Shown: piece after piece, positions 1,753-62,741 of the stretch
Layout of the letters: the number at the start of each line of letters is the position of its first letter
Position numbering within the stretch: the first letter of the stretch is position 1
Origin: Mytilus trossulus
Lineage: Eukaryota
Assembly (NCBI RefSeq): GCF_036588685.1
Contig: NC_086376.1
Span: 37,324,001-37,388,000 of the forward strand
Length of the DNA: 64,000 bases
Reading direction: 5' to 3'
Notes under the pieces: generated by a model
The model's database searches: none
The model's input: the letters and a program-made list of their open reading frames with translations, nothing else
Told to the model about the DNA's origin: nothing
Program-made: the position numbers and the translations under genes

Positions 1753-2226
1753 GGGCCATTCCAGTTAATTTCTGACAGGTGGGGATGGATGGGGAGATTT
1801 TTGTTCATACCTATCAGAAAAAAACATCATGAAAAACTACCTATCAGATCTATAAATTAAGACCTATCAGATGTAGAGTTTCTGTTCATATTGGGTGGAT
1901 GGGCTTTCATGGGAAAAATTGACCTATCAGAATTTTTACTGCAAGGATTGTACCCATCAGAATTTTAAATCCAATACCAGGTAATGCATAATACGAAACT
2001 GTCTACATTCCAAAGCACCCCCAAGATATGAAAAAGGTATTTTTTGTAACCCCTAAGATGTAATTATTTTAAATTATTTACTGTTGCAAGACCCTTAGAA
2101 GTTGTTGCGTAAAAGTGTACCTGTCAGATGAAAAAAAACAAAATTTCACCCCTAAGATGTATAAATTTTACACCCCTCAGAAAGGACCATCCATCCCCCA
2201 TTATCAGATATTAACTGGAATGGCCC
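1753..2226. mobile_element. MITE, PIF/Harbinger-like
   Basis: TIRs GGGCCATTCCAGTTAAT / ATTAACTGGAATGGCCC, 3-bp AAT duplication, internal CCTATCAGA repeats. Confidence 0.8.
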
Positions 2227-4499: not shown

Positions 4500-5430
4500 T
4501 ATCAAACTAGTCAAAACATTTACTAAATTTTATCATCGGTATCAAGACATCATTCGTAAATATAGCTCAACATGCAGACTTCTTATACGTTCAGGTATTT
4601 CAAATCCAATTTTTTTATGGAAATATTCTTTATAAAGCACAAAGGTGTCAGTATTCACCTCAGAAACTTACAAAACCTTTGAATAGACTTATTAAGAAGG
4701 GATATAATTACGATACTGTTGTCAAGTCATCAAAGATTGCATATGTTGGCGTCAATATCGAGTCACTGATAAGATCTTTGCGTCGGAACTAAACACATTT
4801 ATTCTAAAAACAGTTTTTGGTATGACACGGGTTATGTTCTTCTCATATATGTTATGATGGTATGATACTAAACCCCTAACGGGAAGGATTGTGCCTGATG
4901 TTCATATGATGAAATCATAATCTTTCAGTCAGTTTAATTGAAGTCAGGAGCTGGCATGTCAGTTAACTGCTAGTAGTCTGTTGTTATTTATGTATTATTG
5001 TCATTTTGTTTATTTTCTTTGGTTACATCTTCTGACATCAGACTCGGACTTCTCTTGAACTGAATTTTAATGTGCGTATTGTAATGCGTTTACTTTTCTT
5101 CATTGGTTAGAGGTATAGGGGGAGGGTTGAGATCTCACAAACATGTTTATCCCCGCCGCATTTTTGCGCCTGTCCCAAGTCAGGAGCCTCTGGCCTTTGT
5201 TAGTCTTGTATTATTTTTATTTTAGTTTCTTGTGTACAATTTGGAAATTAGTATGGCGTTCATTATCACTGAACTAGTATATATTTGTTTAGGGGCCAGC
5301 TGAAGAACGCCTCCGGGTGCGGGAATTTCTCGCTACATTGAAGACCTGTTGGTGACCTTCTGCTGTTGTGTTTTTTTTATTTGGTCGGGTTGTTGTCTCT
5401 TTGACACATTCCCCATTTCCATTCTCATTT
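4500..5430 (+). mobile_element. 3' fragment of an RT retroelement (Penelope-like): end of ORF plus 3' UTR
   Basis: Encodes KLVKTFTKFYHRY...; near-identical in inverted orientation to 57137-58070. Confidence 0.75.
5105..5195 (+). ncRNA. Twister ribozyme-like motif, P5 permutation (L1 TAA mutated to TAT)
   Basis: GGGG-GAGGG...TAT-CCCC-GCC-[GCA TTTT TGC]-G-CCTG-TCCCAAGT-CAGG, closed by GGTTAGAGG/CCTCTGGCC. Confidence 0.7.
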
Positions 5431-5449
5431 TATCATGCTTATAATTTGA

Positions 5450-6940: not shown

Positions 6941-9900
6941 ACAAGATAATCCATCTTTTGTCTTGTGAATCGAGTTTCAACATTTTATGTTGATGTTCAT
7001 GCTGGGTTTTTTTTTGTGGTTTTTTTTATATATAGATAAGACCGTTGGTTTTCCCGTTTGAATAGTTTAACACTAATTTTGGGGTCCTTTATAGCTTGTT
7101 ACTCGGTGTGAGCCAAAGCTCCGTATTGAAGCCCGTACATTGACATGTAATGGTTTACTTTTATAAATTGTTATTTGGATGGAGAGTTGTCTCATTTGCA
7201 CTCATACCTAATCTTACTATATCTCATAAGTAGATTAAAAACGATTTTGCTGGTTAATAGATATAGCAATAAACATTTCGCCCATAATTCTACATTCAAG
7301 TGATTACATTATTCAAGTTTCAAGATTCTGCAGTTTGCGGTTGTTGGTAATGAACTAGACATTAAGTATTGGCACACGCATGTACGTTAATCAGGAGAAA
7401 TAATATTTCTATCTTTTTTGTTGTACGTGGGGATAAAAAAAAGTATGCTGTCCAAAATAAATGCAAACAAACTTCTTACATCTCAAATTGCAGTATTTTT
7501 TAAATGGCTTAAAGCAATACAACAATGAAGACCACATACTATCTAAAAATCCTAATATAAATCAGAAATAAACTACCGAGAAAATGACAATAGTAAAATG
7601 CTTGATTTGTTTTATTGACATATGTTTTCGGTTGTTGGACATGTCACTCCACCGTCGGCATTGCTATGGGTATGAACTGTGTTCTTCTTCCCGCCAACTG
7701 TTTCTATTTTCTTTTTTATATAAAGCATACTTAAAACAAGGGATTCAAATTTTGGTGATCACATCTATGTACCCAGTTATAGTACGTTTTACAAACAACA
7801 CCTTCATGGTTAGATTTGCCGTTATGGGATATCTGTGGCACAGCTGATAAAAATACATGTAGTATGGAGTTCCTGTTTCACTAGACGCGCCTGTTGTGAT
7901 TGTCATATCATGAAATTAGCCGGTGGAAAGTCATAATTACGTCATTAACGAGGAAATGAGGACAGGATAATTGTAATGAAAAATTGCACAATACCACGAT
8001 CATCTGTGAGTGACCTAAGGATGATGGCTTTAATATGTCAAAGAGGTGATTTGATATGAATTGTTAGCAATCCTGTTGATATTTGAAATATCCGTAGACA
8101 TTTCATTTTATCAAAACTCGGCATTTCATTTACGGATAACATATGATTATACAATATGCATATACACACTTGTTGACGAAGATAAAATATCGTATTGAAC
8201 ATTTTATTTTTGCCAAAATCGTTGCTCTTTATATTAACAAATGTCGTATCGACATGCTTAGTGACATTGCAACTGACAATTATACCTAAATTCAGCGTAA
8301 TAATTATATTTAAGCCTATATCAAGTTAAAAACATTCGCTTTTTCAGCGTCAGAAACCCATACGTTTCTATCGTAAGACAAGGGAAATTAAGTATAACAA
8401 TATGGTAAAAAGTTTTATAACTACGTGAACCTTGATTTAGAACATGACTTATATTTACATTATGTATCAAAATTGGTCATCGTACCTTTCACAACCTATA
8501 TCAATCTTGATTATTTATTTCATATAGATTCTTGTCATTTTTTGTATCTGAATATTAAGTAGTTAATCATACAGTACTTAAACTATTTGAAAACAAAGAC
8601 CCCTTCAAATAAGAACGGCGTTACTTCAGACTTTTTCATCCAGTTTCGCTCCTTTTAGACGTTGAAGCGATTCCCTTTGTGTTTTAAAACTGAAAACCCA
8701 TCTTATTTTCGCAGATACTTTTACTGACCCATTTTGCGGCGATTCAATTTCGCGATTGTAAATTTTACTTGATGAAGATAAATAAGGAAAATTTCAAGTT
8801 TTACATATTCTGGACGATTTATATTCGCATTTGTTTTCTTCTCGCCAAAGTTGCGAAAAGAAGTTGGTATAGAGTATAATGAATGGGGTTATGAGTGTTA
8901 ACAAAGTAAAACTACTGTTGTTTGTATGTATCCGTAACGTATTATATCCAGTGCTATTTGACTATATTTGATTCTGCTTTTGTCGTTTGATTGTTACCAT
9001 CATGATTGATTATTATATCACTGTTGGTCAAAGATACAGAGACGATGCTGTATATCAATGAAATTAAATATCCACACCCGCGCTTTTTTTTATACTTCAG
9101 ATCAACAGAAACAGGTCAAACAAAACCCTGTGAAAGCTAGAGATGTAAAAATACGTTAAAACATTAGAATCTATATAATATAAAGAGACCTAAATACAAT
9201 AGTCAATTTATCCAATGCTTGCGGAAGATGGAACATTAGTTATTTCATAATTTATTGACGAAGCATGTAAGATAACTAAGTAAAAACACCGATTTCATAT
9301 TAAATCTAGCATAAACAGAAGTTTGAAGTTTCTTAAAGTTGATTATACCTTGATTTCAATTTATTTTATATATACAATAAAATCATCATAGATACCAGGA
9401 TTGAAAATTTGTATTTGCGCTAAATGCGCGTTTACTTTATATTTTTTAAATTAAATAAATTTCAATACACCCATTTATTTTAGAAGAGAGAATGTGTTAA
9501 GAAGCACTTCATGTGTGAATGTAATTTTGGAGTTATTAGTGGAATTATGGACCTTAAAATTGTGGGTGGTAGTTTATTCAAATCTTCAACCGTTTTTTGC
9601 ATTGAAGATGATTGTACTTTTGTTAATGGGCAGATATTGTTCTAAACTAACTTTTAATGATTTCATTAGAATGGATTATTAATTTATCGTTTTGTAAGGT
9701 TGCCTGTTTAGATCATGTAGCATTTTAGGAACACTTTTAGTGGTGTGATATCTGTTGCAGGCATATAATGCAGATTTTCTTTGCATATGTTCACATCTGA
9801 ATATATCATTTGTGTTGTCGTTTGTTTTTGTTGAATTTTAATGTTTCTGTTGTTTCGTTGATTTTCTCTTATAATAGTTGATGCGTTTCCCTCAGTTTTG

Positions 9901-10199
9901 GTTAGTGACCCGGATTAGTTTTCTCTCGATCGATTTATGACTTTGGAACTGCGGTATACTACTGTTGCTTCTTTATATAATCTGAAGGGTTTAATTCAAA
10001 ACATGTCAAGCAACATGAAAATGTTTGGTACCAAAATTGTTTTGTTATCTCTTTCTTATATTAATTTTAATAAAATGAGCTTTCGTCTAAATGAGGGGGA
10101 TCGATTTGCTTTTGGAGCTAGTTGTTTTATATGCGCGTTCTAATGTAGATATTCATATAGTGTAAAGCCGATTAGATCTGTTCTGAATGCGACCACGAA

Positions 10200-25806: not shown

Positions 25807-28800
25807 CTGTAAAATAAACAGAAAGTTTTTAAATTAGTTTTCAAGTTGCTCTTTCATGAAATTAGATACCCACATTTCTGTTTATTCTTAACATAAAAAA
25901 TGCAAAATAAAACATTAAATTAACAATTATATCTTAAGAATTATGTTCACTTCTAAAAAAAATACTGGGCTGATCATCTGAGAAAATGGGAGATTGGAAT
26001 ATCAAATATTATAATATAAAGTCAAGATAAACTATTCTACATAATTCTTTACAATTTCCCTGACAAAATAGTTATATTTAAAAGAAGATGTGGTATGCTT
26101 GCCAATGAGACACCAATCCAATAATCCAGCCAAGACACAAGGACAAAGATGTGTACAACTATTAATCACCATACAGTCTTAAACAATGAGGAAAACCATT
26201 ATGTAATTTAAGCTTTAAAAGGTACATGTACAGGCATGACAAAACTTGAAACAATTGAAGCAAAAAAAGCTTTATGCTGAAAACAACATCCACTAGAGTG
26301 CAGGCTCTTAACTTGGGACAAGTAAATATACAGAATAAGGCAGAATTAACAAATAATAAAAAGATGTGATATGATTGCCAATGAGACAACACTCCTTACC
26401 AGAGACCAAATGACATAAAAATTAACAACTAAAGTCATTGTACAACAATGAGTTTATCCAATAAAACTGCATAGTAAGCTATAAAAGGACCCCAAAATAA
26501 CAAAAGTAAAACGATAAAGTTACAAACAAGCTTGTGAGCGTGCCCCCTACTCTTACATGAAATATTTGTGTAACAGTACAATATAAGGACAAGCTGGAAT
26601 TCGCTTCACTAGGGCCTATATAATCAAATCAATACTAAAGGACAGAAACAGTTAACAGAAAAAGTAATGACAGAGTGCAGGATCTAGAAGAAGTACTCCC
26701 AAGATACAGAAGGTCAGTTTGCCCAATATCAAGAATGGACTAAAACTGGTTATCTGTTTGGAATTTGTTTCCCATTTTGTCATGGAGGGGCGTTTTATAG
26801 CTAACTATACAGTACACTAGACCTGCTTAATCTTGAAGTTTGTAATATATGTACAGTCAGTCACCTATAGAGCATCTGGATAGTTGCCTTTAATTGGCAA
26901 TCATACATGTACCATATTTCCTTATTCTATATAAGAATAAGTAACATGAGATGAATAATGTTTGTTAACAGAACCAGATGCTTTATTGATAGTACTTTTA
27001 CACCCTAACACTCTATATTGGCTAAATAACAGATCTATTTTAGAGCAGGGTATAAATCTTAGAGCAATATGCACAAAATAACTCAATATTGCCATTACAC
27101 TTTGAAAAGATACTCCATCTTGAAACAAATGTTCGGTTTTACAGCTATTTGTGTTTTGTTTTACGTAAAATGAGAAAATATGCAAAATACAATATTTATA
27201 GTTGTCAATTTCTCTGCTTTGAAAAAGTACAATATGAAATTTAAAATAGATATCTATTTATATATTTCGTATTTATCAAAGAGTACATATTTTTGTTTTT
27301 GAAGATAATTGAATCCCACTCACAAGTTTTAAAATAAAAAATGTTCTTGTAACCACTTGAACATCAATATATCTGACAGAAAATGATCTAAAATAGAATT
27401 TAAATGGGAACCAAAGATTTCCTTGAAATACCATAGTACAATAATAGGACAGCTTTCCCAGCACTCCTGTTACTAGTAAACAAAGGCTACAAATTTGATA
27501 AAATTAGTATCATTATTGTAATTTATTATAACTATTATATTGTCTAAAATAAAATAATTGTATGGAGATTGTAAAGAGCTAATATGCACTTTTATTTATT
27601 GTCAAATATTCAATAGTTATTGTTAAATTTGGAATGATAAACAAAAGAAATTGTGTTCTGTGGGCTTGAAACAGAAATGTTGTTGCATGTATTAAAAACC
27701 ATATTTCTACAACAACATAATAGCAACTCCGAATCTGATATTTTATATCTGTGATTAAAGACTAATTTTAGATTACTGTTTCCTTTAAAATTGTTTAGCT
27801 TCAATAAAAGAATGGAGTTATCTAATTGAAAATATGATGGGAAAAAATGAGAGAAATTGTCTCCCCTTGATTTCTTTAACTTGGTTTGTCCTGTTTGCTC
27901 TTGTTTTTTTGTTGTTCAATCTTTTTTAGGGTATGTGTGCTTTTAGTAGAATTTTGTCAGTTGGGTTTGTTTTAAGGGGGGGGGGGACAAAGTATTGTAT
28001 GTCTTTATTCAACTAGTGGATTTTTATTGCCTTGGAAGCCTCCCCTTTATTTATCTTAATTATTTGTATAGTAAAAAATTGGTAAATTTGGATTAGGATT
28101 TTATTATTCTAATTTGTAGTTGTCCTGTTTTGTTAATGAAGAAACTGTAATATATAGAGAAACATCTCTGAAACTAACAGGTCAATACTACTTATTGTTT
28201 AATTCATTAATAATTCAACAAAAAGTAATCAAACCAAATGTGTGTTTCTACAAAACTTATAAGTATTTTTCTAAATAATAAAAATTTGCTTAACAATTGT
28301 TTTCAGAGAAATTCCACTTAATAAGGGAGATACAATACAATTTTGAAAGAAAACATCCTTAATGACATGCAATGCTTGTCACTTTCCTTTTCCTTAATGG
28401 GGGCCCCTCAGGTAAAAATAAACAGAGAAAATCAATACACACACCTGTACAGTAAAACCTATTTGTGCTGATATATTCCATTTAAGACAATTTTGCTGAA
28501 AACTTCCAGATTATTCATCTTCATAAAATATTTACATTTAGTCAGTAATTTTTATCGTTAAACAAGGATCCAACATGATAAATAAACTAATTTATCTTTC
28601 TACATTCTGAATCTTACAAGTAATTTATTTGGTATTGTCACATTTTGTGTAATTTGCGTCATATGTAAATATCTGATATATATTTTCAATAATAAATTTC
28701 CCTTCAAACTATTAAAATAACTATGAATTCTAAACTGACCGGTCAAATTTTGACTTCATATTTAAAAATACCAATTTTGAGAGATAACCCTGTTTGTTTT

Positions 28801-56040: not shown

Positions 56041-56938
56041 TATAAAAAAGAAGATGTGGTATGGTTGCCAATGCGACAAGAAAGAAAATAATGACACACA
56101 TTAACAATTACAGGTCACCGTACGGCCTTCAACAATGAGCAAATCCCATACCGCATATAGTCAGCTATAAAAACCCTGATAAGACACTGTAAAACAATTC
56201 AAGCGAGAAAACTAACGGCCTTATTTATGTAAAAAAATGAACGAAAAACAAAGACGTAACACATAAACAAACGACAACCACTGAATTACAGGCTCCTGAC
56301 TTGGGACAGGCACATACATAAATAATGTGGCGGGGTTAAACATGTTAGCGGGATCCCAACCCTCCCCCTAACCTGGGACAGTGGTATAACAGTACAACAT
56401 AAGAACGAACTATAAAAATCAGTTGAAAAAGGCTTAACTCATCAGATAGACAAAAAATAAAAGTGGACGTGGCCGGGTACTTATACATCCCGACACAAAA
56501 AGACACAATGAACAGATTTGAGAGTACTCGCAGTTATCTGACAGCTAGTTCAAAGCCATTAACAACTAATAAAAAAATCATGCCTCTAAGACTAAGCAAT
56601 CAATCCATACACATCCAACATACAATGGATTTAGTGTAAAGACGTCATAAACAGCCAGAGAAAAACATGACCTTGTGCAATGCCAATTTACAGGTATCGA
56701 CAGATTGTAGATCCATGAAAATGTATATGTATATAACATACTAGTAATATTTAGTTAGCTTTTAATCTACTGATAACGAAATCAATATTTATACCAATAA
56801 AAACAATATTCAATGATCTTATTACAGTGTTGAATAGGTAACCTTTTAGAATAAGTTTATTTAAAGGAGCACGGTTAACAACATTTCCGTAAAAATGAGG
56901 ATGTGCTATCCCGTTTGAAATAAGTTTTCTACGTTTAT
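56041..56938 (-). mobile_element. 3' fragment of a second Penelope-like RT subfamily, in HLCS intron 1
   Basis: The peptide GIAHPHFYGNV...PLNKLILKGY..NTVIRSL is homologous to the end of ORF 57777-58196. A distinct 3' UTR follows. Confidence 0.7.
56278..56384 (-). ncRNA. Twister ribozyme, P5 permutation, core motifs intact
   Basis: Minus strand reads CAGG-TTA-GGGG-GAGGG-TT-GGGATCCC-GCT-AACATGTT-TAA-CCCC-GCC-ACAT[loop]ATGT-G-CCTG-TCCCAAGT-CAGG-AG-CCTG, with outer stem CCACTG/CAGTGG. Predicted U^A cleavage between 56338 and 56337. Confidence 0.8.
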
Positions 56939-57136
56939 ATACATGAATATAGTGGTGAAATATCATTGAAATTCAAACAAATGTTGATAACCTCACACAG
57001 GTTCAAGCATTTACAGCACTAAATTTAGCCAAAAATGTTAAGCATTTACCATGTTTACTGGAAATTAATCAAAATTTAATAGAGAAAAACACATTTTTTT
57101 TAAACTGATAATATAATTTTAGCCACTGGTACTAGC

Positions 57137-58223
57137 TATAAAATTGAGAATGGAAATGGGGAATGTGTCAAAGAGACAACAACCCGACCAAATAAAAAAA
57201 CAACAGCAGAAGGTCCCCAACAGGTCTTCAATGTAGCAAGATATTCCCGCACCTGGAGGCGTCCTTCAGCTGGCCCCTAAACAAATATATACCAGTTCGG
57301 TGATATTGAACACCATACTAATTTCCAAATTGTACACAAGAAACTAAAATTAAAATAATACAAGACTAACAAAGGCCAGAGGCTCCTGACTTGGGACATG
57401 CCAAAAATGGGGCGGGGTTAAACATGTTTGTGAGTTCTCAACCCTCCCATTTATACCTCTACCCAATGTAGAAAAGTAAACGCATAACAATACACACATT
57501 AAAATTCAGTTCAGGAGAAGTCCGAGTCTGATGTAAGAAGAAGTAACCAAAGAAAATAAACAAAATGACAATAATACATAAATACAACAGACTACTAGCA
57601 GTTAACTGACATGCCAACTTCAGACTTCTATTAAACTGACTAAAAGATTATGATTTCATCATATGAGCATCAGGCACAATCCTTCCCGTTAGGGGTTTAG
57701 TATCATACCATCATAAGATATATGAGAATAACATAACCCGTGTCATACCAACAACTGTTTTTTTTAATAAATGTGTTTAGTTCGGACGCAAAGACCCTAT
57801 AAGTGAATCAATATTAACGTCAAAATATGCAATCTTTAATGACCTGACAACAGTATCGTAACTATATCCCTTCTTAATAAGTCTATTCAAAGGTTTTGTT
57901 ATTTTCTGAGGTGAATACTGACACCTTTGTGCTTTATAAAGAATATTTCCATAAAAAATTGGATGTGAAATACCTGCACGTATAAGAAGTCTGCATGTTG
58001 AGCTATATTTACGAATGATGTCCTTATACCGATGATAAAATTTAGTACATGTTTTGACTAGTTTGTGATATCGAAAACTCTGGTGTAATAATTTTTCAGT
58101 AATACATAAATTTCTCTCGTTAAAATCTAAAACATTGTTACATACACGAGCCAATCGTACAAGTTGGGATATATAAACACCGTAAGATGGTGACAATGGA
58201 ACGTCACCATCTAAAAATGGATA
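57137..58223 (-). mobile_element. 5'-truncated Penelope-like RT element (RT C-terminal region plus 3' UTR), in HLCS intron 1
   Basis: YPFLDGDVPLSPSYGVYISQLVRLARVC...EKLLHQ is typical of the PLE RT thumb region. No C-terminal GIY-YIG. Same family as 4500-5430. Confidence 0.75.
57374..57463 (-). ncRNA. Degenerate twister copy
   Basis: GAGGG...TAACCCCGCC...TCCCAAGTCAGG retained. P2, P4 and one palindrome carry mismatches. Confidence 0.6.
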
Positions 58224-59739: not shown

Positions 59740-59817
59740 ATTATGTTATGATAATGATTTGATAATGTTATGATAATGATTATGTTATGATAATGATTAT
59801 GATAATGTTTTGATAAT
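59740..59817. repeat. (TATGATAATGAT)n-like simple repeat at the LINE 5' junction
   Basis: Directly visible repeated TGATAATG. Confidence 0.7.
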
Positions 59818-62741
59818 GGGTGATTTAAACTTCAATATGCTTGATGACAATAAAAGCTCAACTTTAAATGATTCTTGTGATATTTTCTGTATTAAAAACA
59901 TTATTAATAAAGCAACATGTTATAATAGAAATTCGAAACCAACTCTTCTTGATGTAATTTTAACTAATCAAGAAAATAAATGTGGTAAAAGATGTAATTT
60001 TGGATGTGGCTTAAGTGATGTTCACAACCTGATTGGGGTTCAAATAAAATGTGAACGACCTAATATCAAACCAAAATACAGAAAATGTAGAAGTTTTAAA
60101 AATTTTGATGTAAATGATTTTTTATCTGATTTGAATGAGTTAAATTGGGATGTTGACCCTCATAATAACATAAATACTGAGTATGAAAACTTCAACAAGA
60201 AGTTTATTGAAACAGCAAATAAACATGCACCCTTTAAAGAAAGAAAATACTATCTAAACAGATACCATACATGAACAAACAGTTAAAATCTGCAATTTAT
60301 AAAAAGAAAATGCTTTACAACAAATTTCAAAACAGCAAGACATGGGATGCATACAAAACACAAAGAAATTTTGTCACTAAACTTAAAAAACAATCCATAA
60401 ATAGATACTTCATAGAACGCTGCACAGGTGGTCCTAAGTCGAAAGATTTCTGGCCAACAGTTAAGCCATTCCTTACCAACAAAGGATGCACCAGCCAAAA
60501 AGAAACCATACTGCAGGAAAACAACAAAATCATCACGAACCAACAAGAAATATCTGAAATTTTTAATGACTTTTTTGTTAATGTTGCAAAAAACATTGGT
60601 GACAACAACATACAGGTGAATGACAAACACCCAAGTATAGAAGCTATAAGTAATAAATACTCAAACGGGTCAAAATCAAATAAACTTATTTTTCAGCCTA
60701 TAAATGAGGAATTTGTTTCTAAAAGAATTGGTAAAATAAATGTTAAAAAGGCTACTGGTATAGATGGTATATCACCAAAAATTTTACACGCTGCTAAACC
60801 TGTAGTGATTAAACCTATCACACAGCTTGTAAATTTATCATTATCCACTTCCATTTTTCCAGACTCATTAAAAATTGCCCAAGTGGCACCTGTTCACAAA
60901 AAAAATAGTGTTCTTGAAAAGGGTAATTATAGACCAGTTAGTGTTTTACCTGCTATATCTAAAATTTTTGAAACAGCCATAGAAAATCAACTCACTAAAT
61001 ACTTTGATGATATTTTCGACCATTTTCTTGCGGCATTTCGAGCTGGTTATGGCTGCCGGTCAACATTACTCAAAATTTTGGAAGATTGGAAAAAGGCACT
61101 GGATAATAATAAATATTTAGCGGCTATATTAATGGACCTAAGTAAAGCCTTTGACTGTCTTCCACATGATTTACTTCTTTTGAAATTGGAAAATATGGCC
61201 TTAGTCCATCTGCTCTGGAATTACTCAAAAGCTATCTGACTGCAAGAAAACAGTGTGTAAAAATAGGCCAGAGTATCAGTCAAATGCAAGATATATATAA
61301 AGGTGTTCCTCAGGGATCTATACTAGGCCCTGTATTATTTAATGTTTTTATAAATGATATTTTTCTTTTTGTCAAACACTGTGATTTATACAACTATGCT
61401 GATGATAACACCCTCTCAAAAACAGGTACTACTTTGGAATCAGTTATTAAACCCTTAGAGGAAGACAGTAATTCCCTAATCTCATGGTTCTCTTTCAACA
61501 AAATGCAGGCAAACCCAGAAAAATTCCAGGCAATTTCCATAGGTAAAAAAACACACACTCAAAATATTACTTTCAACCTAAATGGATTCAACATAAAATG
61601 TGACGACGAAGTGAAACTTCTCGGTGTAACAATAGACTTTAAACTGGATTTTAACACTCACATCTCAAATATTTGCAAAAAAGCTGCACGACAACTAAAC
61701 GTTCTAAAAAGAATTGGCACTCATCTCACCAGACTTTCAAAACTTACAATATACCACTCATTTATCATGTCAAACCTCAGCTACTGTCCTCTTACATGGC
61801 ACTTCTGCAGTGAACAAAACACAAAGAAAATAGAAAAAATACAAGAAAGAGCACTCAGATTTATTTATGACGACTACACAAATTCTTACAATACACTTCT
61901 TGAACAATCTAAGCTACCAGCACTAAAAATCAGAAGATTGAGAACCATGGCATTAGAGACATATAAAATAATAAATAAATCAAGTCCAGAATTCCTACAT
62001 AATTTAGTAAATATTAAAGAAAATTCATATAACTTCAGGTACAAAGGCATAGCAGATATACCACGGCCAAAAACAACAAGGTATGGTAATAAAAACTTTA
62101 GTTATGAGGCAGCAAAACTCTGGAACTCCTTGCCAAATGAGGCAAGGAGCTTATCAACTTTTGGCCAGTTCAAAAATTTTATCTCCACCTGGTGTTTTTC
62201 AGAAAAATGTACATGCAGTTCTTGTAAATAATGTACTTACTTGCTGCCCCATAACTTGATCTCGAAGCCTGCTGTTTATTTGGTTTTTTTAATGTTTTAT
62301 TTTTTTGCAGTTATTTTTATTTTTTATTTAGCCATTTATTTCTTTTGCTTATGCATTACCTTTGCTATAGCTGCATGCAGTCTTTTGTTTGTGCTTAAAG
62401 TGTTTAAAAGTTTGCATGTGCTACTGTTATATAAATACTATGTGCTACTGTATATGTGCTGATATTAGACATTTGTTTTAATCTATCTTGCAATGCTTAG
62501 CTTTTATTCTGCATGTGCTATCTATGTATTAATATATATATGTGCTATCTATGTATTAATATATATATATGTGCTGTCTATTTGCATATTTGTGTTGTAT
62601 GTGTGTCTGATGTTATTACATGTATGTTTTGTTTATTAATATCAGTCGGTTAAAGAGCTCTTAAGAGCTCATGTTCATTGTTATTATGTATATATATGCA
62701 ACCCGACTTTAAATAAAGATTACTTTACTTTACTTTACTTT
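59810..62741 (+). mobile_element. 5'-truncated CR1-group LINE; ORF2 (APE endonuclease end plus RT) broken by two frameshifts
   Basis: IMGDLN, LLDVILTN, LSDVH (endonuclease). NYRPVSVL, MDLSKAFD, GVPQGSILGP, YADD (RT). 3' AATAAA followed by a (TACTT)n tail. Confidence 0.93.

Follow-up and report, generated by a model that had tools for sequence, protein, structure and literature searches.

The described system closest to the RNA module reported here is the type-P5 twister (Roth et al. 2014; RF02684, clan CL00120), which has both ends in P5 and the same order of elements, with P2, P3 and P4, the GAGGG and UAA loops, GC(C), a UCCCAAG(C/U) loop and the pseudoknots T1 and T2. Twister cores are also found in retroelements. 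The T-variants and truncated twisters of RTE/Perere-3 non-LTR retrotransposons (Liu et al. 2021, PMC8501958; de la Pena et al. 2020, PMC7761336) are of type P1 and are located at the element 5′ end; P1 is weak or absent, its 5′ strand being supplied by the target-site duplication, and GAGGG is followed by UUGG or UUGA. Twister cleavage is possible without P1, and twisters with many imperfections retain cleavage (PMC8501958 and PMC11662667 for the former, PMC11662667 for the latter).

Cleavage that depends on a second RNA copy is known from another ribozyme class. Two copies of the minimal hammerhead of Penelope-like elements, whose stem III loop is palindromic, act together as a dimer in cleavage (Cervera and de la Pena 2014; Lunse et al. 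2017; PMC6765202). The Naiad clade of these elements is characterized by an N-terminal GIY-YIG endonuclease, a C-terminal reverse transcriptase (RT), a CxC motif, DKG changed to DKA, a body of 3.4-4.4 kb, pseudo-LTR tandems and 5′ truncation (Craig et al. 2021, PMC8557442). Naiads dominate bivalve genomes at very high copy number and are reported not to carry the canonical hammerhead of other Penelope-like clades; the same authors asked whether a ribozyme is needed.

The module and its host element

In the 64-kb stretch of Mytilus trossulus DNA that was analysed (the window), we found a complete twister-like module on the minus strand, a second copy on the plus strand and a decayed one (Table 1). 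The module is a 3′-UTR part of very abundant Naiad-type Penelope-like elements, located about 330 nt past the stop codon and about 315 nt short of the element 3′ end. The element unit is 4,016-4,032 nt long and occurs as partial head-to-tail tandems (pseudo-LTRs), while element copies have variable 5′ ends (5′ truncation) and a common 3′ end. Copies number in the thousands; for example, a search of the 1.3-Gb genome gave 7,740 exact matches for one P1-region pattern and about 39,000 for the P4 hairpin word.

Body length, tandems, 5′ truncation, copy number and the absence of a hammerhead all agree with the Naiad description. We recognised the RT motifs LPKLHK, SFDFSTLYTTLP, GIPMGTN and YLDD in the element ORF, which stops after the RT, and the ORFs of one locus (L044) carry the CxC (..TSCNCSN..) and DKA (..VPADKAANN..) motifs. 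Neither Pfam, searched with the ORFs and longer homologues, nor the PDB sequences returned an RT or endonuclease; we therefore assign the element to Naiad from its layout and from motifs identified by eye. For GIY-YIG, ORF1 had no Pfam match and none was recognised by eye, with the analysis covering the unit downstream of its 5′ ~950 nt. No CUGAUGA was present on the element strand, and there was no Rfam hammerhead match. The string CUGAUGAG, which precedes the family A module by ~70 nt, has the look of a hammerhead box; it was rejected as a chance occurrence because its GAAA partner is absent and Rfam gave no match.

Table 1. Module parts and element copies in the window.
Feature	Positions	Strand	Details	Basis
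Complete twister-like module, family A	56278-56384	-	P5 5′ strand to P5 3′ strand	Sequence reading
P5 5′ strand	56372-56384	-	CCACUG (56384-56379), bulge UCC, CAGG (56375-56372); partners CCUG (56292-56289) and CAGUGG (56283-56278)	
UUA between P5 5′ strand and P2′		-	Family A module	Sequence reading
P2′ GGGG	56365-56368	-	Partner CCCC at 56335-56332	
GAGGG	56360-56364	-	First G, presumed catalytic guanine; GGG, T2 pseudoknot strand	
Palindrome 1, GGGAUCCC	56350-56357	-	2 nt (UU) past GAGGG	
Linker GCU		-	Between GGGAUCCC and AACAUGUU, family A module	Sequence reading
Palindrome 2, AACAUGUU	56339-56346	-	Last base immediately before scissile U	
U^AA	56336-56338	-	Predicted cut between U56338 and A56337	Homology to twister L1 loop
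P2 CCCC and L2 GCC	56329-56335	-	CCCC 56335-56332; GCC 56331-56329, with GC as T1 strand	
P3 hairpin ACAU ... AUGU	56312-56328	-	Single G between P3 and P4	
P4 hairpin CCUG-UCCCAAGU-CAGG	56295-56310	-	Loop CCC to T2, loop GU to T1	
AG between P4 and P5′		-	Family A module	Sequence reading
P5 3′ strand CCUG-UAAUU-CAGUGG	56278-56292	-		Sequence reading and MFE fold
5′-truncated family A Naiad copy bearing the module	56041-56932	-	ORF remnant 56751-56966	blastn extents against loci L016, L026, L030
5′-truncated family B Naiad copy	from 57138	-	RT C-terminal ORF 57777-58196	blastn extents
Decayed family B module copy	57385-57448	-	AUGGGAGGG, GAGAACUC; P3 and P4 broken	58 bits (covariance model)
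5′-truncated family B Naiad copy	4503-5433	+	3′ end common to all B copies, 5′ ends differ	blastn extents
Family B module copy	5105-5195	+	GAGAUCUC; P3 GCA/UGC; P5 GGUUAGAGG/CCUCUGGCC	84.3 bits (covariance model)

The order of elements at 5105-5195 (+) is identical to that at 56384-56278 (-), and the ORF tail of the family A copy is homologous to the end of the family B ORF. In the 5105-5195 copy A+2 is changed (UAU at 5148-5150); as other family B copies have UAA, this copy is a mutant. The descriptor GAGGG..TAA....GC..YCCCAAG had 2 matches in the window compared to 0.00 expected, and the P4 hairpin word with at most 2 mismatches had 3 compared to 0.01. A preliminary description of this DNA had assigned the module to two retroelement subfamilies; both of these copies do carry it, while the families proved to be far more than two.

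Evidence for a type-P5 twister fold

At the gathering threshold, Rfam gave 0 matches in the 64-kb window and 0 matches on 20 distant Naiad loci, and the twister-P5 model RF02684 run on the whole genome had no match among 79 scored candidates. The best Rfam match was a local alignment of twister-P1 over P3 and P4, with 16.5 bits against a gathering threshold of 67.2 (E 0.86). Thus, the check with Rfam twister models that had been suggested produced a partial twister-P1 alignment and no call by the P1 or P5 models. The covariance model built in this analysis (R1) scored the core at 56295-56368 (-) at 87.3 bits. The MFE fold of the family A module recovered P5, P2, P3 and P4 as proposed. The z-scores of the monomer MFE were unremarkable for the modules folded (-0.4, -1.8 and +0.1), as is expected of pseudoknotted RNA, and are evidence neither way.

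In searches with the covariance model, marine metagenome contigs added about 20 lineages in which the module follows a Naiad RT gene; most of the distant ones are represented by one contig each. The matches were on the ORF strand and began 150-950 nt past the RT ORF, in lineages at 40-99% RT identity. Covariation statistics were computed for 29 distinct sequences and palindrome statistics for 28 distinct regions. The alignment used was based on the covariance model; a full-module MAFFT alignment misplaced lineages with a shorter second palindrome. Since the alignment model left T1, T2 and the palindromes unpaired, the counts given for them are independent of how the alignment was made. Two lineages, I (L121) and J (L145), are each known from one decayed copy whose P2 register is ambiguous, and were given no weight, and the rarer families C and X are known from genome pattern matches plus one or two loci.

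Over the whole structure 92.2% of the cells were paired, compared to 71.3% in shuffles. The covariation score was 0.518 versus 0.156 for shuffled alignments, with none of 500 shuffles reaching the observed value, and controls with slid registers scored 0.05-0.08. Double changes were seen in all four pairs of P2 and of P3, in 2/4 pairs of P4, 2/3 of T2 and 1/2 of T1. For example, P2 GGGG/CCCC covaries to GGGA/UCCC, GUGU/ACAC and others, while P4 covaries to GCUG/CAGC, ACCG/CGGU, GCCG/CGGC and GCAG/CUGC. Nearly every lineage is closed by a P5 helix, 5-21 bp long, whose sequence is unrelated from lineage to lineage. The compensatory differences in P3 and P5 between the copies at 56278-56384 and 5105-5195, where pairing was said to be kept, are real.

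Both pseudoknots vary in a manner that keeps them paired. In T2, pair 7-119 is GC in 16 sequences and AU in 4, and pair 9-117 is GC in 16, GU in 6, AU in 2 and UA in 1. The AU form of pair 7-119 occurs in family D (1,187 copies), which has GAAGG with the loop UCCUAAG, and GGGA with UCCC. In T1, pair 44-123 is G.U in 11 sequences, A-U in 7 and C-G in 6, and pair 45-122 is C-G in 29/29. One subgroup has GAGG instead of GAGGG, the loop UUCCAAGG and a non-pairing U.U at one T2 position.

The letters of the core are nearly fixed. In GAGGG the first G is present in 26/27 and the A in 27/27 (column counts); at the cut site we found U at N-1 in 26/29 sequences, A+1 in 27/29 and A+2 in 28/29. The C of L2 is invariant (29/29), and the C, A, A and G of the P4 loop occur in 29, 28, 27 and 29 of 29. 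The core letters, the covarying helices P2 and P4 with the optional P3 and P5, and the double pseudoknot of T1 and T2 together support a type-P5 (circularly permuted) twister fold, in the element order given in the preliminary description, and site-specific cleavage is what such a fold would predict. Unlike the described type-P5 twister, the Naiad module has U or G rather than C as the last loop base, with L2 changed to match; it is situated in the 3′ UTR of a eukaryotic retroelement, and it scores below the Rfam thresholds.

Palindromes at the place of P1

The most conspicuous difference from the type-P5 twister is at P1, a helix of typically at least 2 bp that in twisters joins the bases directly 5′ of the cut site to those directly 3′ of GAGGG. 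Instead of a P1 hairpin, the Naiad module has UU followed by a pair of self-complementary words that a short linker separates, as proposed earlier for the two window copies, and an intramolecular P1 partner is absent in all lineages found. In the 56384-56278 and 5105-5195 copies the bases facing each other at the place of P1 are U.U, U.U and G.G. A canonical P1 formed by register shifts was considered by eye and rejected, the shifts giving at most a 2-bp UU/AA pairing.

Perfect palindromes 8 nt or longer were observed in 27/28 regions; in shuffled sequences the number of such regions averaged 2.4 and never exceeded 8. Two separate palindromes were present in 18/28 regions (shuffled mean 1.3). 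Conservation of the palindromes across copies had been named as a test of the dimer idea, and the first of these counts shows such conservation. Palindrome 1 is represented by 16 different words across lineages, with double (compensatory) changes in all four of its pairs and 94.8% of the cells paired, so the covariation claimed for it extends well beyond two copies. Even its central pair varies (AU in 11, CG in 11, GC in 4 and UA in 1 sequences).

The described layout of two tight palindromes holds for the palindromes themselves, while their lengths are often greater than stated. Palindrome 1 often extends to 10 nt (U+8+A), and palindrome 2 to 10-12 nt, in which case it includes the scissile U and A (U-1 and A+1). 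Variants of palindrome 2 are AACUAGUU, AAACGUUU, ACCGGU, AAACCGGUUU and AACC(N)GGUU. Palindrome 2 always adjoins the cut site, which is the place of the P1 5′ strand in canonical twisters. The UU spacer after GAGGG is conserved in 29/29 and 27/29 sequences in its two columns.

The 8-mer palindromes have no monomer fold (0.0 kcal/mol). As homodimers, GGGAUCCC and AACAUGUU reached -15.0 and -6.4 kcal/mol, respectively. For 4/5 first-palindrome words tested the homodimer energy was -10.8 to -15.0 kcal/mol; the variant UAAAUUUA, known from a single copy, gave -2.2 kcal/mol, and 8-nt second-palindrome words gave -5.3 to -6.6 kcal/mol. The central pair of palindrome 1 covaries, but its adjacent bases cannot pair in a hairpin; pairing of two copies is therefore the sole explanation by base pairing. 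These patterns, read from the sequences, support the earlier suggestion that the palindromes are not hairpins and would pair between two RNA copies. Retroviral dimer-initiation palindromes are also self-complementary RNA words whose letters vary by lineage while the symmetry is kept. They are located in hairpin loops of the 5′ leader, whereas the Naiad palindromes are inside the ribozyme core beside the scissile bond.

Candidate functions and their significance

The reading that we favour, with a probability of about 0.55, is that the module is a 3′-UTR ribozyme of Naiads with a type-P5 twister fold, whose palindromes pair two copies and which cuts tandem transcripts. Self-cleavage is predicted at the step U56338/A56337. 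In place of the P1 hairpin there are UU, a first palindrome (8-10 nt), a linker (2-4 nt) and a second palindrome (6-12 nt) that runs up to the scissile nucleotide, and each palindrome would pair with the identical word in a second ribozyme copy. That copy could belong to a different RNA molecule, or it could be the other module of one tandem (pseudo-LTR) transcript, some 4 kb distant. The two duplexes may lie side by side between both cores, with the second one standing in for the P1 of both. If the dimeric minimal hammerheads are a guide, tandem transcripts cut at two modules would yield RNA of unit length, which could then be made circular and serve as a template. The sequences show the fold, the conservation and covariation of the palindromes, and the host element with the place of the module in it; that the RNA cleaves, how the dimer is arranged and what it does in the life cycle of the element is what we infer. 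A stricter version, an obligate- or assisted-dimer twister with a shared two-helix interface, a common P1 and unit-length RNAs that template the partial tandems, is put forward tentatively.

Some features of the module complicate the idea that dimers aid cleavage. When the second palindrome is long, U-1 and A+1 are inside it; the scissile step would then be placed in the dimer helix, which would oppose in-line attack, and dimerisation could hinder cleavage, as an off state, instead of helping it. Moreover, as P1 is dispensable, the monomer may cleave alone. On these grounds one may propose a monomeric P1-less twister in which the palindromes have a role of their own in RNA-RNA dimerisation, comparable to the dimer-initiation loops of retroviruses; they would either link two element RNAs for template switching or co-packaging or act as an off switch that locks the cut site in a duplex. 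The dispensability of P1 in twisters (PMC8501958; PMC11662667) fits such a monomer, the frequent coverage of U-1 and A+1 by the second palindrome fits protection of the site and not catalysis, and partial-tandem insertion of Penelope-like elements is a possible outcome of template switching. On the other hand, a generic dimerisation signal need not be inside a ribozyme, while here every lineage has the words exactly between the cut site and GAGGG, behind a fixed UU spacer, and the second palindrome ends where the P1 5′ strand would be. We consider this explanation rather unlikely, yet it is the strongest of the rivals to a ribozyme that uses its palindromes to pair two copies.

Structures in the 3′ UTR are commonly recognised by non-LTR reverse transcriptases. 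The module could thus have kept the twister fold and lost cleavage, being retained as a structural handle for the RT of the element, and the missing twister call by Rfam would fit this. Such a handle appears improbable to us, since the letters required for catalysis only (the first G of GAGGG, A+1, A+2 and the loop AAG) are near-invariant at 40-99% RT identity while the helices vary freely, and imperfect twisters still cleave (PMC11662667). A further reading takes the palindromes as acting at the DNA level, as sites of dimeric proteins or restriction-like sites, or takes the likeness to twister as a chance property of a repeat. The words do resemble classical DNA palindromes of 6-8 bp, such as GGATCC, AGATCT, GGCGCC and ACATGT. 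A protein site would keep its sequence, whereas here, across 16 words, symmetry alone is kept; chance is excluded by the pseudoknots and helix covariation, along with 0 genome matches for the reversed patterns. This reading is already largely refuted, and we assign it a very small probability.

As a ribozyme that pairs two copies, the Naiad module would combine features of several described systems. It resembles the T-variants in having a twister core in a retroelement with P1 weak or absent and with UUGG or UUGA after GAGGG, and differs from them in being of type P5, in the 3′ UTR of a Penelope-like element and with conserved palindromes. With the dimeric minimal hammerheads it shares the host class, the location in a tandem-repeated region, a reduced helix at the cut site combined with a palindrome, and a tandem layout that supplies two copies. 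It differs in the ribozyme class and in having two palindromes rather than one palindromic stem III loop. Also, dimer cleavage has been shown for the hammerheads, whereas for the Naiad module we describe its prerequisite in the sequence. The P1-less mini-twister (cited in PMC8501958 and PMC11662667) cleaves and is an engineered deletion, in contrast to a natural design with conserved replacements.

In the literature outside subscription-only journals we found no link of twister to Naiads or to Penelope-like elements. A natural twister design that is P1-less and has two self-complementary inserts is new. That Naiads have a conserved twister-fold module where other Penelope-like clades have their hammerhead suggests that Penelope-like elements in general require a self-cleaving RNA, with the structural class swapped in Naiads. 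If the palindromes mediate cleavage in dimers, two unrelated ribozyme classes would have reached dimer dependence in the same kind of retroelement. A dimer twister, if true, would be the Naiad counterpart of the dimeric hammerhead and the first natural twister formed by trans-assembly, and it would explain how Naiads manage without hammerheads.

A twister-like module in the window

The family A module was read directly on the minus strand, in the 5' to 3' direction. The 5' part of P5, CCACUG-UCC-CAGG, is followed by UUA, P2' GGGG and GAGGG; the region of P1 is occupied by UU, GGGAUCCC, GCU, AACAUGUU and U^AA (^, predicted cut), and the 3' half consists of P2 CCCC, GCC, P3 ACAU..AUGU, G, P4 CCUG-UCCCAAGU-CAGG, AG and the P5' strand CCUG-UAAUU-CAGUGG. 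The predicted scissile step, U56338/A56337, is at the position given in the preliminary description, which had proposed a twister core in P5-permuted order for this copy and for a second one on the plus strand. The element order was recovered in both, with the fold backed by covariation and with compensated P3 and P5 in the second copy. The latter carries UAU in place of the UAA seen in the rest of family B, and is therefore regarded as a mutant.

Copies of the module and other features, in the window and at loci read outside it
Feature	Position	Strand	Remark
Family A module	56384-56278	-	read directly
Family B module	5105-5195	+	element order as in family A copy; GAGAUCUC, P3 GCA/UGC, P5 GGUUAGAGG/CCUCUGGCC
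Third, decayed module copy	57448-57385	-	sequence reading
Weak covariance model match	26307-26396	-	15 bits, E 0.36 (model E-values rough); ends in UUGUCCCAAGUUAAG; likely an old, degenerate copy of the module
CAGUGGUUGUCGUUU block	56271-56283	-	covers the P5 3' strand and the bases immediately following it; also at L068, L069, L079, L080
CUGAUGAG box	56410-56445	-	hammerhead-like
Truncated family B Naiads	4503-5433; 57138-58223		5'-truncated
Two consecutive ORFs	59810-61239	+	154 and 322 aa, beside Naiad copies
Head-to-tail repeat	L044:3777-5968 = 7809-10000		99.95% identity
In-frame TGA	L044:8465-8467		..ADKAANNIIIV-TGA-RKFYIEV..
SECIS_1 match	L044:5930-5994		Rfam, 32.8 bits (gathering 35), E 0.0013
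UACCAAGU-loop variants	G000:C1:1156668-1156954; L044:1595-1668, 2035-2106		examples
Tandem array	L043:4209-5271		unit of about 60 nt, about 1 kb

A loose twister descriptor gave two matches in the window compared to 0.00 expected. The check with Rfam twister models, proposed in the preliminary description, produced no match in the window at the gathering threshold; the best one was a local twister-P1 alignment across P3 and P4 (16.5 bits, E 0.86), and RF02684 gave no call in the whole-genome Rfam search.

Covariation across the collected copies, proposed as a further check, was evident. It was counted in a model-made alignment (A7; 31 rows, 29 distinct) for P2, P3, P4, the pseudoknots T1 and T2, and both palindromes as self-pairs. 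Paired cells made up 92.2% compared to 71.3% upon shuffling, and the covariation score was 0.518 compared to 0.156, values reached by none of 500 shuffles. Such shuffle counts are not probabilities, as the sequences are related; the control with partners slid by 1-3 columns preserves this relatedness and still scored far lower, 0.05-0.08. Changes on both sides were seen in 4/4 pairs of P2, 4/4 of P3, 2/4 of P4, 2/3 of T2 (pair 7-119: GC 16, AU 4) and 1/2 of T1 (pair 44-123: GU 11, AU 7, CG 6). The model that made the alignment left T1, T2 and the palindromes unpaired, so A7 was not fitted to them. In a separate check, a closing P5 helix of 5-21 bp, unrelated in sequence, adjoined the core in nearly every lineage (mean length 8.9 compared to 4.9 in shuffles).

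By column counts, the letters with a catalytic or tertiary-structure role hardly vary: the first G (26/27) and the A (27/27) of GAGGG, U-1 (26/29), A+1 (27/29) and A+2 (28/29) around the predicted cut, the C of the L2 loop after P2 (29/29), the two loop A entries (28/29 and 27/29) and the loop G (29/29). From covariation and these letters together, we conclude that the module genuinely belongs to the twister fold and has its elements in type-P5 order.

Palindromes in place of P1

As the preliminary description had stated, P1 is missing: the bases that should form it oppose as U.U, U.U and G.G, and no intramolecular partner was found in any lineage. Kept instead are a spacer UU (U in 29/29 and 27/29), a palindrome, a linker of 2-4 nt and another palindrome, the end of which reaches or takes in the base preceding the cut. 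The conservation of palindromes across copies, on which the dimer model had been made to depend, was observed as well: 27 of 28 distinct regions contain a perfect palindrome that is 8 nt or longer (mean 2.4, maximum 8 in 1,000 shuffles), and 18 of 28 contain two separate ones, each 6 nt or longer (shuffled mean 1.3). Most of the other regions hold near-palindromes that show either a CpG-type change or an odd centre.

The first palindrome, described earlier as covarying, takes 16 different words across lineages: GAGAUCUC, GGGAUCCC, UGGCGCCA, UGGAUCCA, UGGGCCCA, GCAGCUGC, GGGCGCCC, GGGGCCCC, GAGCGCUC, GUGCGCAC, GGUGCACC, ACGCGCGU, GAGUACUC, UGGCAUGCCA, GGCAUGCC and GUAGCGCUAC. In A7 it has changes on both sides in 4/4 pairs and 94.8% of cells paired, the central pair being AU 11, CG 11, GC 4 and UA 1. 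The second palindrome (AACAUGUU, AACUAGUU, AAACGUUU, ACCGGU, AAACCGGUUU or AACC(N)GGUU) has such changes in 1/4 pairs in the family A register, with 81% of cells paired; in several lineages, the palindromic symmetry lies in a shifted register. In many lineages it reaches 10-12 nt, e.g., UAAACAUGUUUA and UAAACCGGUUUA, and then contains U-1 and A+1.

A hairpin was rejected as the reason for the covariation of the first palindrome, since its central pair is made of adjacent bases that are unable to pair in a hairpin. A protein-binding site was rejected too: it would keep the letters, yet only the symmetry is kept. By ViennaRNA, no 8-mer has a monomer structure, while homodimers of the first palindromes of families A-D have energies of -10.8 to -15.0 kcal/mol (only -2.2 kcal/mol for the single-copy variant UAAAUUUA) and those of the 8-nt second palindromes -5.3 to -6.6 kcal/mol. 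Because adjacent central bases covary, no monomer fold exists, homodimers are stable and letters are not kept, the best-supported reading is that each palindrome would pair with its twin in a second copy. From covariation, the twister assignment and the replacement of P1 by palindromes appear well supported; catalysis and an effect of dimerisation are putative at this stage.

Host element and further lineages

The P1-region pattern GGGGAGGGTTGNGATCNCNNNAACATGTTTA has 7,740 exact matches in the 1.3-Gb genome (0 for the reversed pattern), and the P4 hairpin word CCTGTMCYAAGTCAGG has 39,139 (0 for the control). The 3' end is common to the copies and lies about 315-360 nt past the module; 5' ends vary. 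In young family B copies the frame stays open over 480 codons, and pairs at a spacing of 4,016-4,032 nt are frequent; at L044, a locus with such a tandem, a full unit comes head-to-tail after a 5'-truncated copy. The ORF carries ..TSCNCSN.. (CxC), ..VPADKAANN.. (DKA), LPKLHK, SFDFSTLYTTLP, GIPMGTN and YLDD, and terminates after the RT. These motifs and the layout match exactly the description by Craig et al. 2021 (PMC8557442) of the Naiad clade of Penelope-like elements: C-terminal RT, CxC, DKG changed to DKA, a 3.4-4.4 kb body, partial tandems of the pseudo-LTR kind and, in bivalves, copy numbers in the tens of thousands. Sequence searches of Pfam and PDB with the ORF did not recognise the RT, and the N-terminal GIY-YIG domain is unconfirmed, so the assignment rests on motifs and layout. 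Canonical hammerhead motifs are reported to be absent from Naiads (PMC8557442); here, CUGAUGA was not found on the element strand, nor a hammerhead by Rfam in the unit or in 20 related loci. The CUGAUGAG box, which families A and C keep some 70 nt 5' of the module, is unlikely to be a hammerhead, as the GAAA partner and an Rfam match are absent.

The single reading frame of family B is broken by one in-frame TGA, and the SECIS_1 match lies about 50 nt past the stop codon. Family B looks like a selenocysteine-encoding Naiad, a kind reported in clams (PMC8557442). At L043, a family B copy borders directly on the array at its 3' end, either by insertion into a satellite or by expansion of the tail. 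The two ORFs in the window look like a non-LTR (jockey/CR1-like) endonuclease-RT fragment, a different retroelement.

Genome pattern searches without the two common types revealed family C, GAGGG UU UGGCGCCA (ACA/GCA) AACUAGUU or AACAUGUU UAA, including CpG-decayed UGGCACCA forms. Most single-base palindrome variants were uncompensated, as expected from neutral decay of inserted copies. The abundant family D (1,187 exact matches) reads GGGA GAAGG UU UGGAUCCA UU(A) AAACGUUU AA and UCCC GCU GCAAA..UUUGC A CCUG-UCCUAAGU-CAGG, with P2 GGGA/UCCC compared to GGGG/CCCC. GAGGG becomes GAAGG exactly where the loop CCC becomes CCU, a compensatory change in T2.

An RT-ORF profile gave 80 loci on marine metagenome contigs (33-99% identity). 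A covariance model built from eight natural copies, with pairs marked only in P2, P3 and P4, found the module in about 20 additional lineages, with RT identity as low as 40%; it lies on the strand of the ORF and 150-950 nt downstream of it. Most contigs lacking a match stop too soon past the ORF to hold it. Among these lineages, L140 reads GUGU GAGGG UU GCAGCUGC UCA(A) ACCGGU C AA ACAC ACU, P3, GCUG-UCCCAAGU-CAGC. The L094/L108/L095 group has GUGU/GAGU/GAGC GAGG UU, then GGGCGCCC, GGGGCCCC or GUGCGCAC, and .. AAACCGGUUU AA A/GCCC CC, P3, G ACCG-UUCCAAGG-CGGU; L120 has UGGCAUGCCA with loop UACCAAGU. A variant with this P4 loop, in which GAGGU pairs with loop A, is of similar abundance genome-wide to the UCCCAAGU type. 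Tandem arrays with a 39-nt period also contain the P4 hairpin of this variant, which looks as though a satellite had arisen from a piece of the module. The CAGUGGUUGUCGUUU block is common to families A, C and D despite differing other flanks and may be part of a separate downstream fold.

Possible dimer topology and role in the element's life cycle

In a symmetric dimer, the second palindromes of two RNAs would pair into a helix directly 5' of each scissile base, in the place of P1. The first palindromes would also meet, end to end, each beginning 2 nt past the GAGGG of one core and ending 2-4 nt before the strand stacking under the other; this would place a pair of similarly long helices, side by side, between the two cores. 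As a model, this two-helix topology is self-consistent. On the other hand, in the many lineages where the second palindrome contains U-1 and A+1, the scissile step would be helical in a full duplex; therefore, dimerisation could also be a protected, off state. Moreover, the twister P1 is dispensable in vitro (PMC8501958; PMC11662667), so a monomer might cleave alone. Given these two possibilities, we put a dimer-assisted twister, catalysis included, at a probability of about 0.55, and consider a monomeric ribozyme with a separate or inhibitory dimer signal less likely.

Known twisters of RTE/Perere-3 elements are truncated or variant, at the 5' end (PMC8501958; PMC7761336); these are of type P1 and 5'-terminal, while the Naiad module has type-P5 order and lies downstream of the ORF. 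A large survey of natural twisters adds bivalves to the hosts and treats type-P1 permutations (PMC11662667), and no new twister permutations emerged from a search for such forms (PMC10085705). In the searchable literature, with subscription-only papers outside its scope, we found no report joining 'twister' and 'Naiad' and, by title, abstract or passages, none of a twister in Penelope-like elements.

In canonical Penelope-like elements, the pseudo-LTR contains minimal hammerheads whose stem III loop is palindromic and which cleave as dimers; through the tandem layout, two hammerheads are proposed to come together and release unit-length RNA, possibly circularised (PMC6765202; PMC7761336). The Naiad module is likewise palindromic and lies in a stretch duplicated in partial tandems; dimer cleavage, established for the hammerheads (PMC6765202), would extend to it by analogy. 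A transcript through L044 would include two modules at a spacing of 4,032 nt. Cleavage of both would yield unit-length RNA with ends inside the element, which would fit the observed insertions, longer than one unit and shorter than two.
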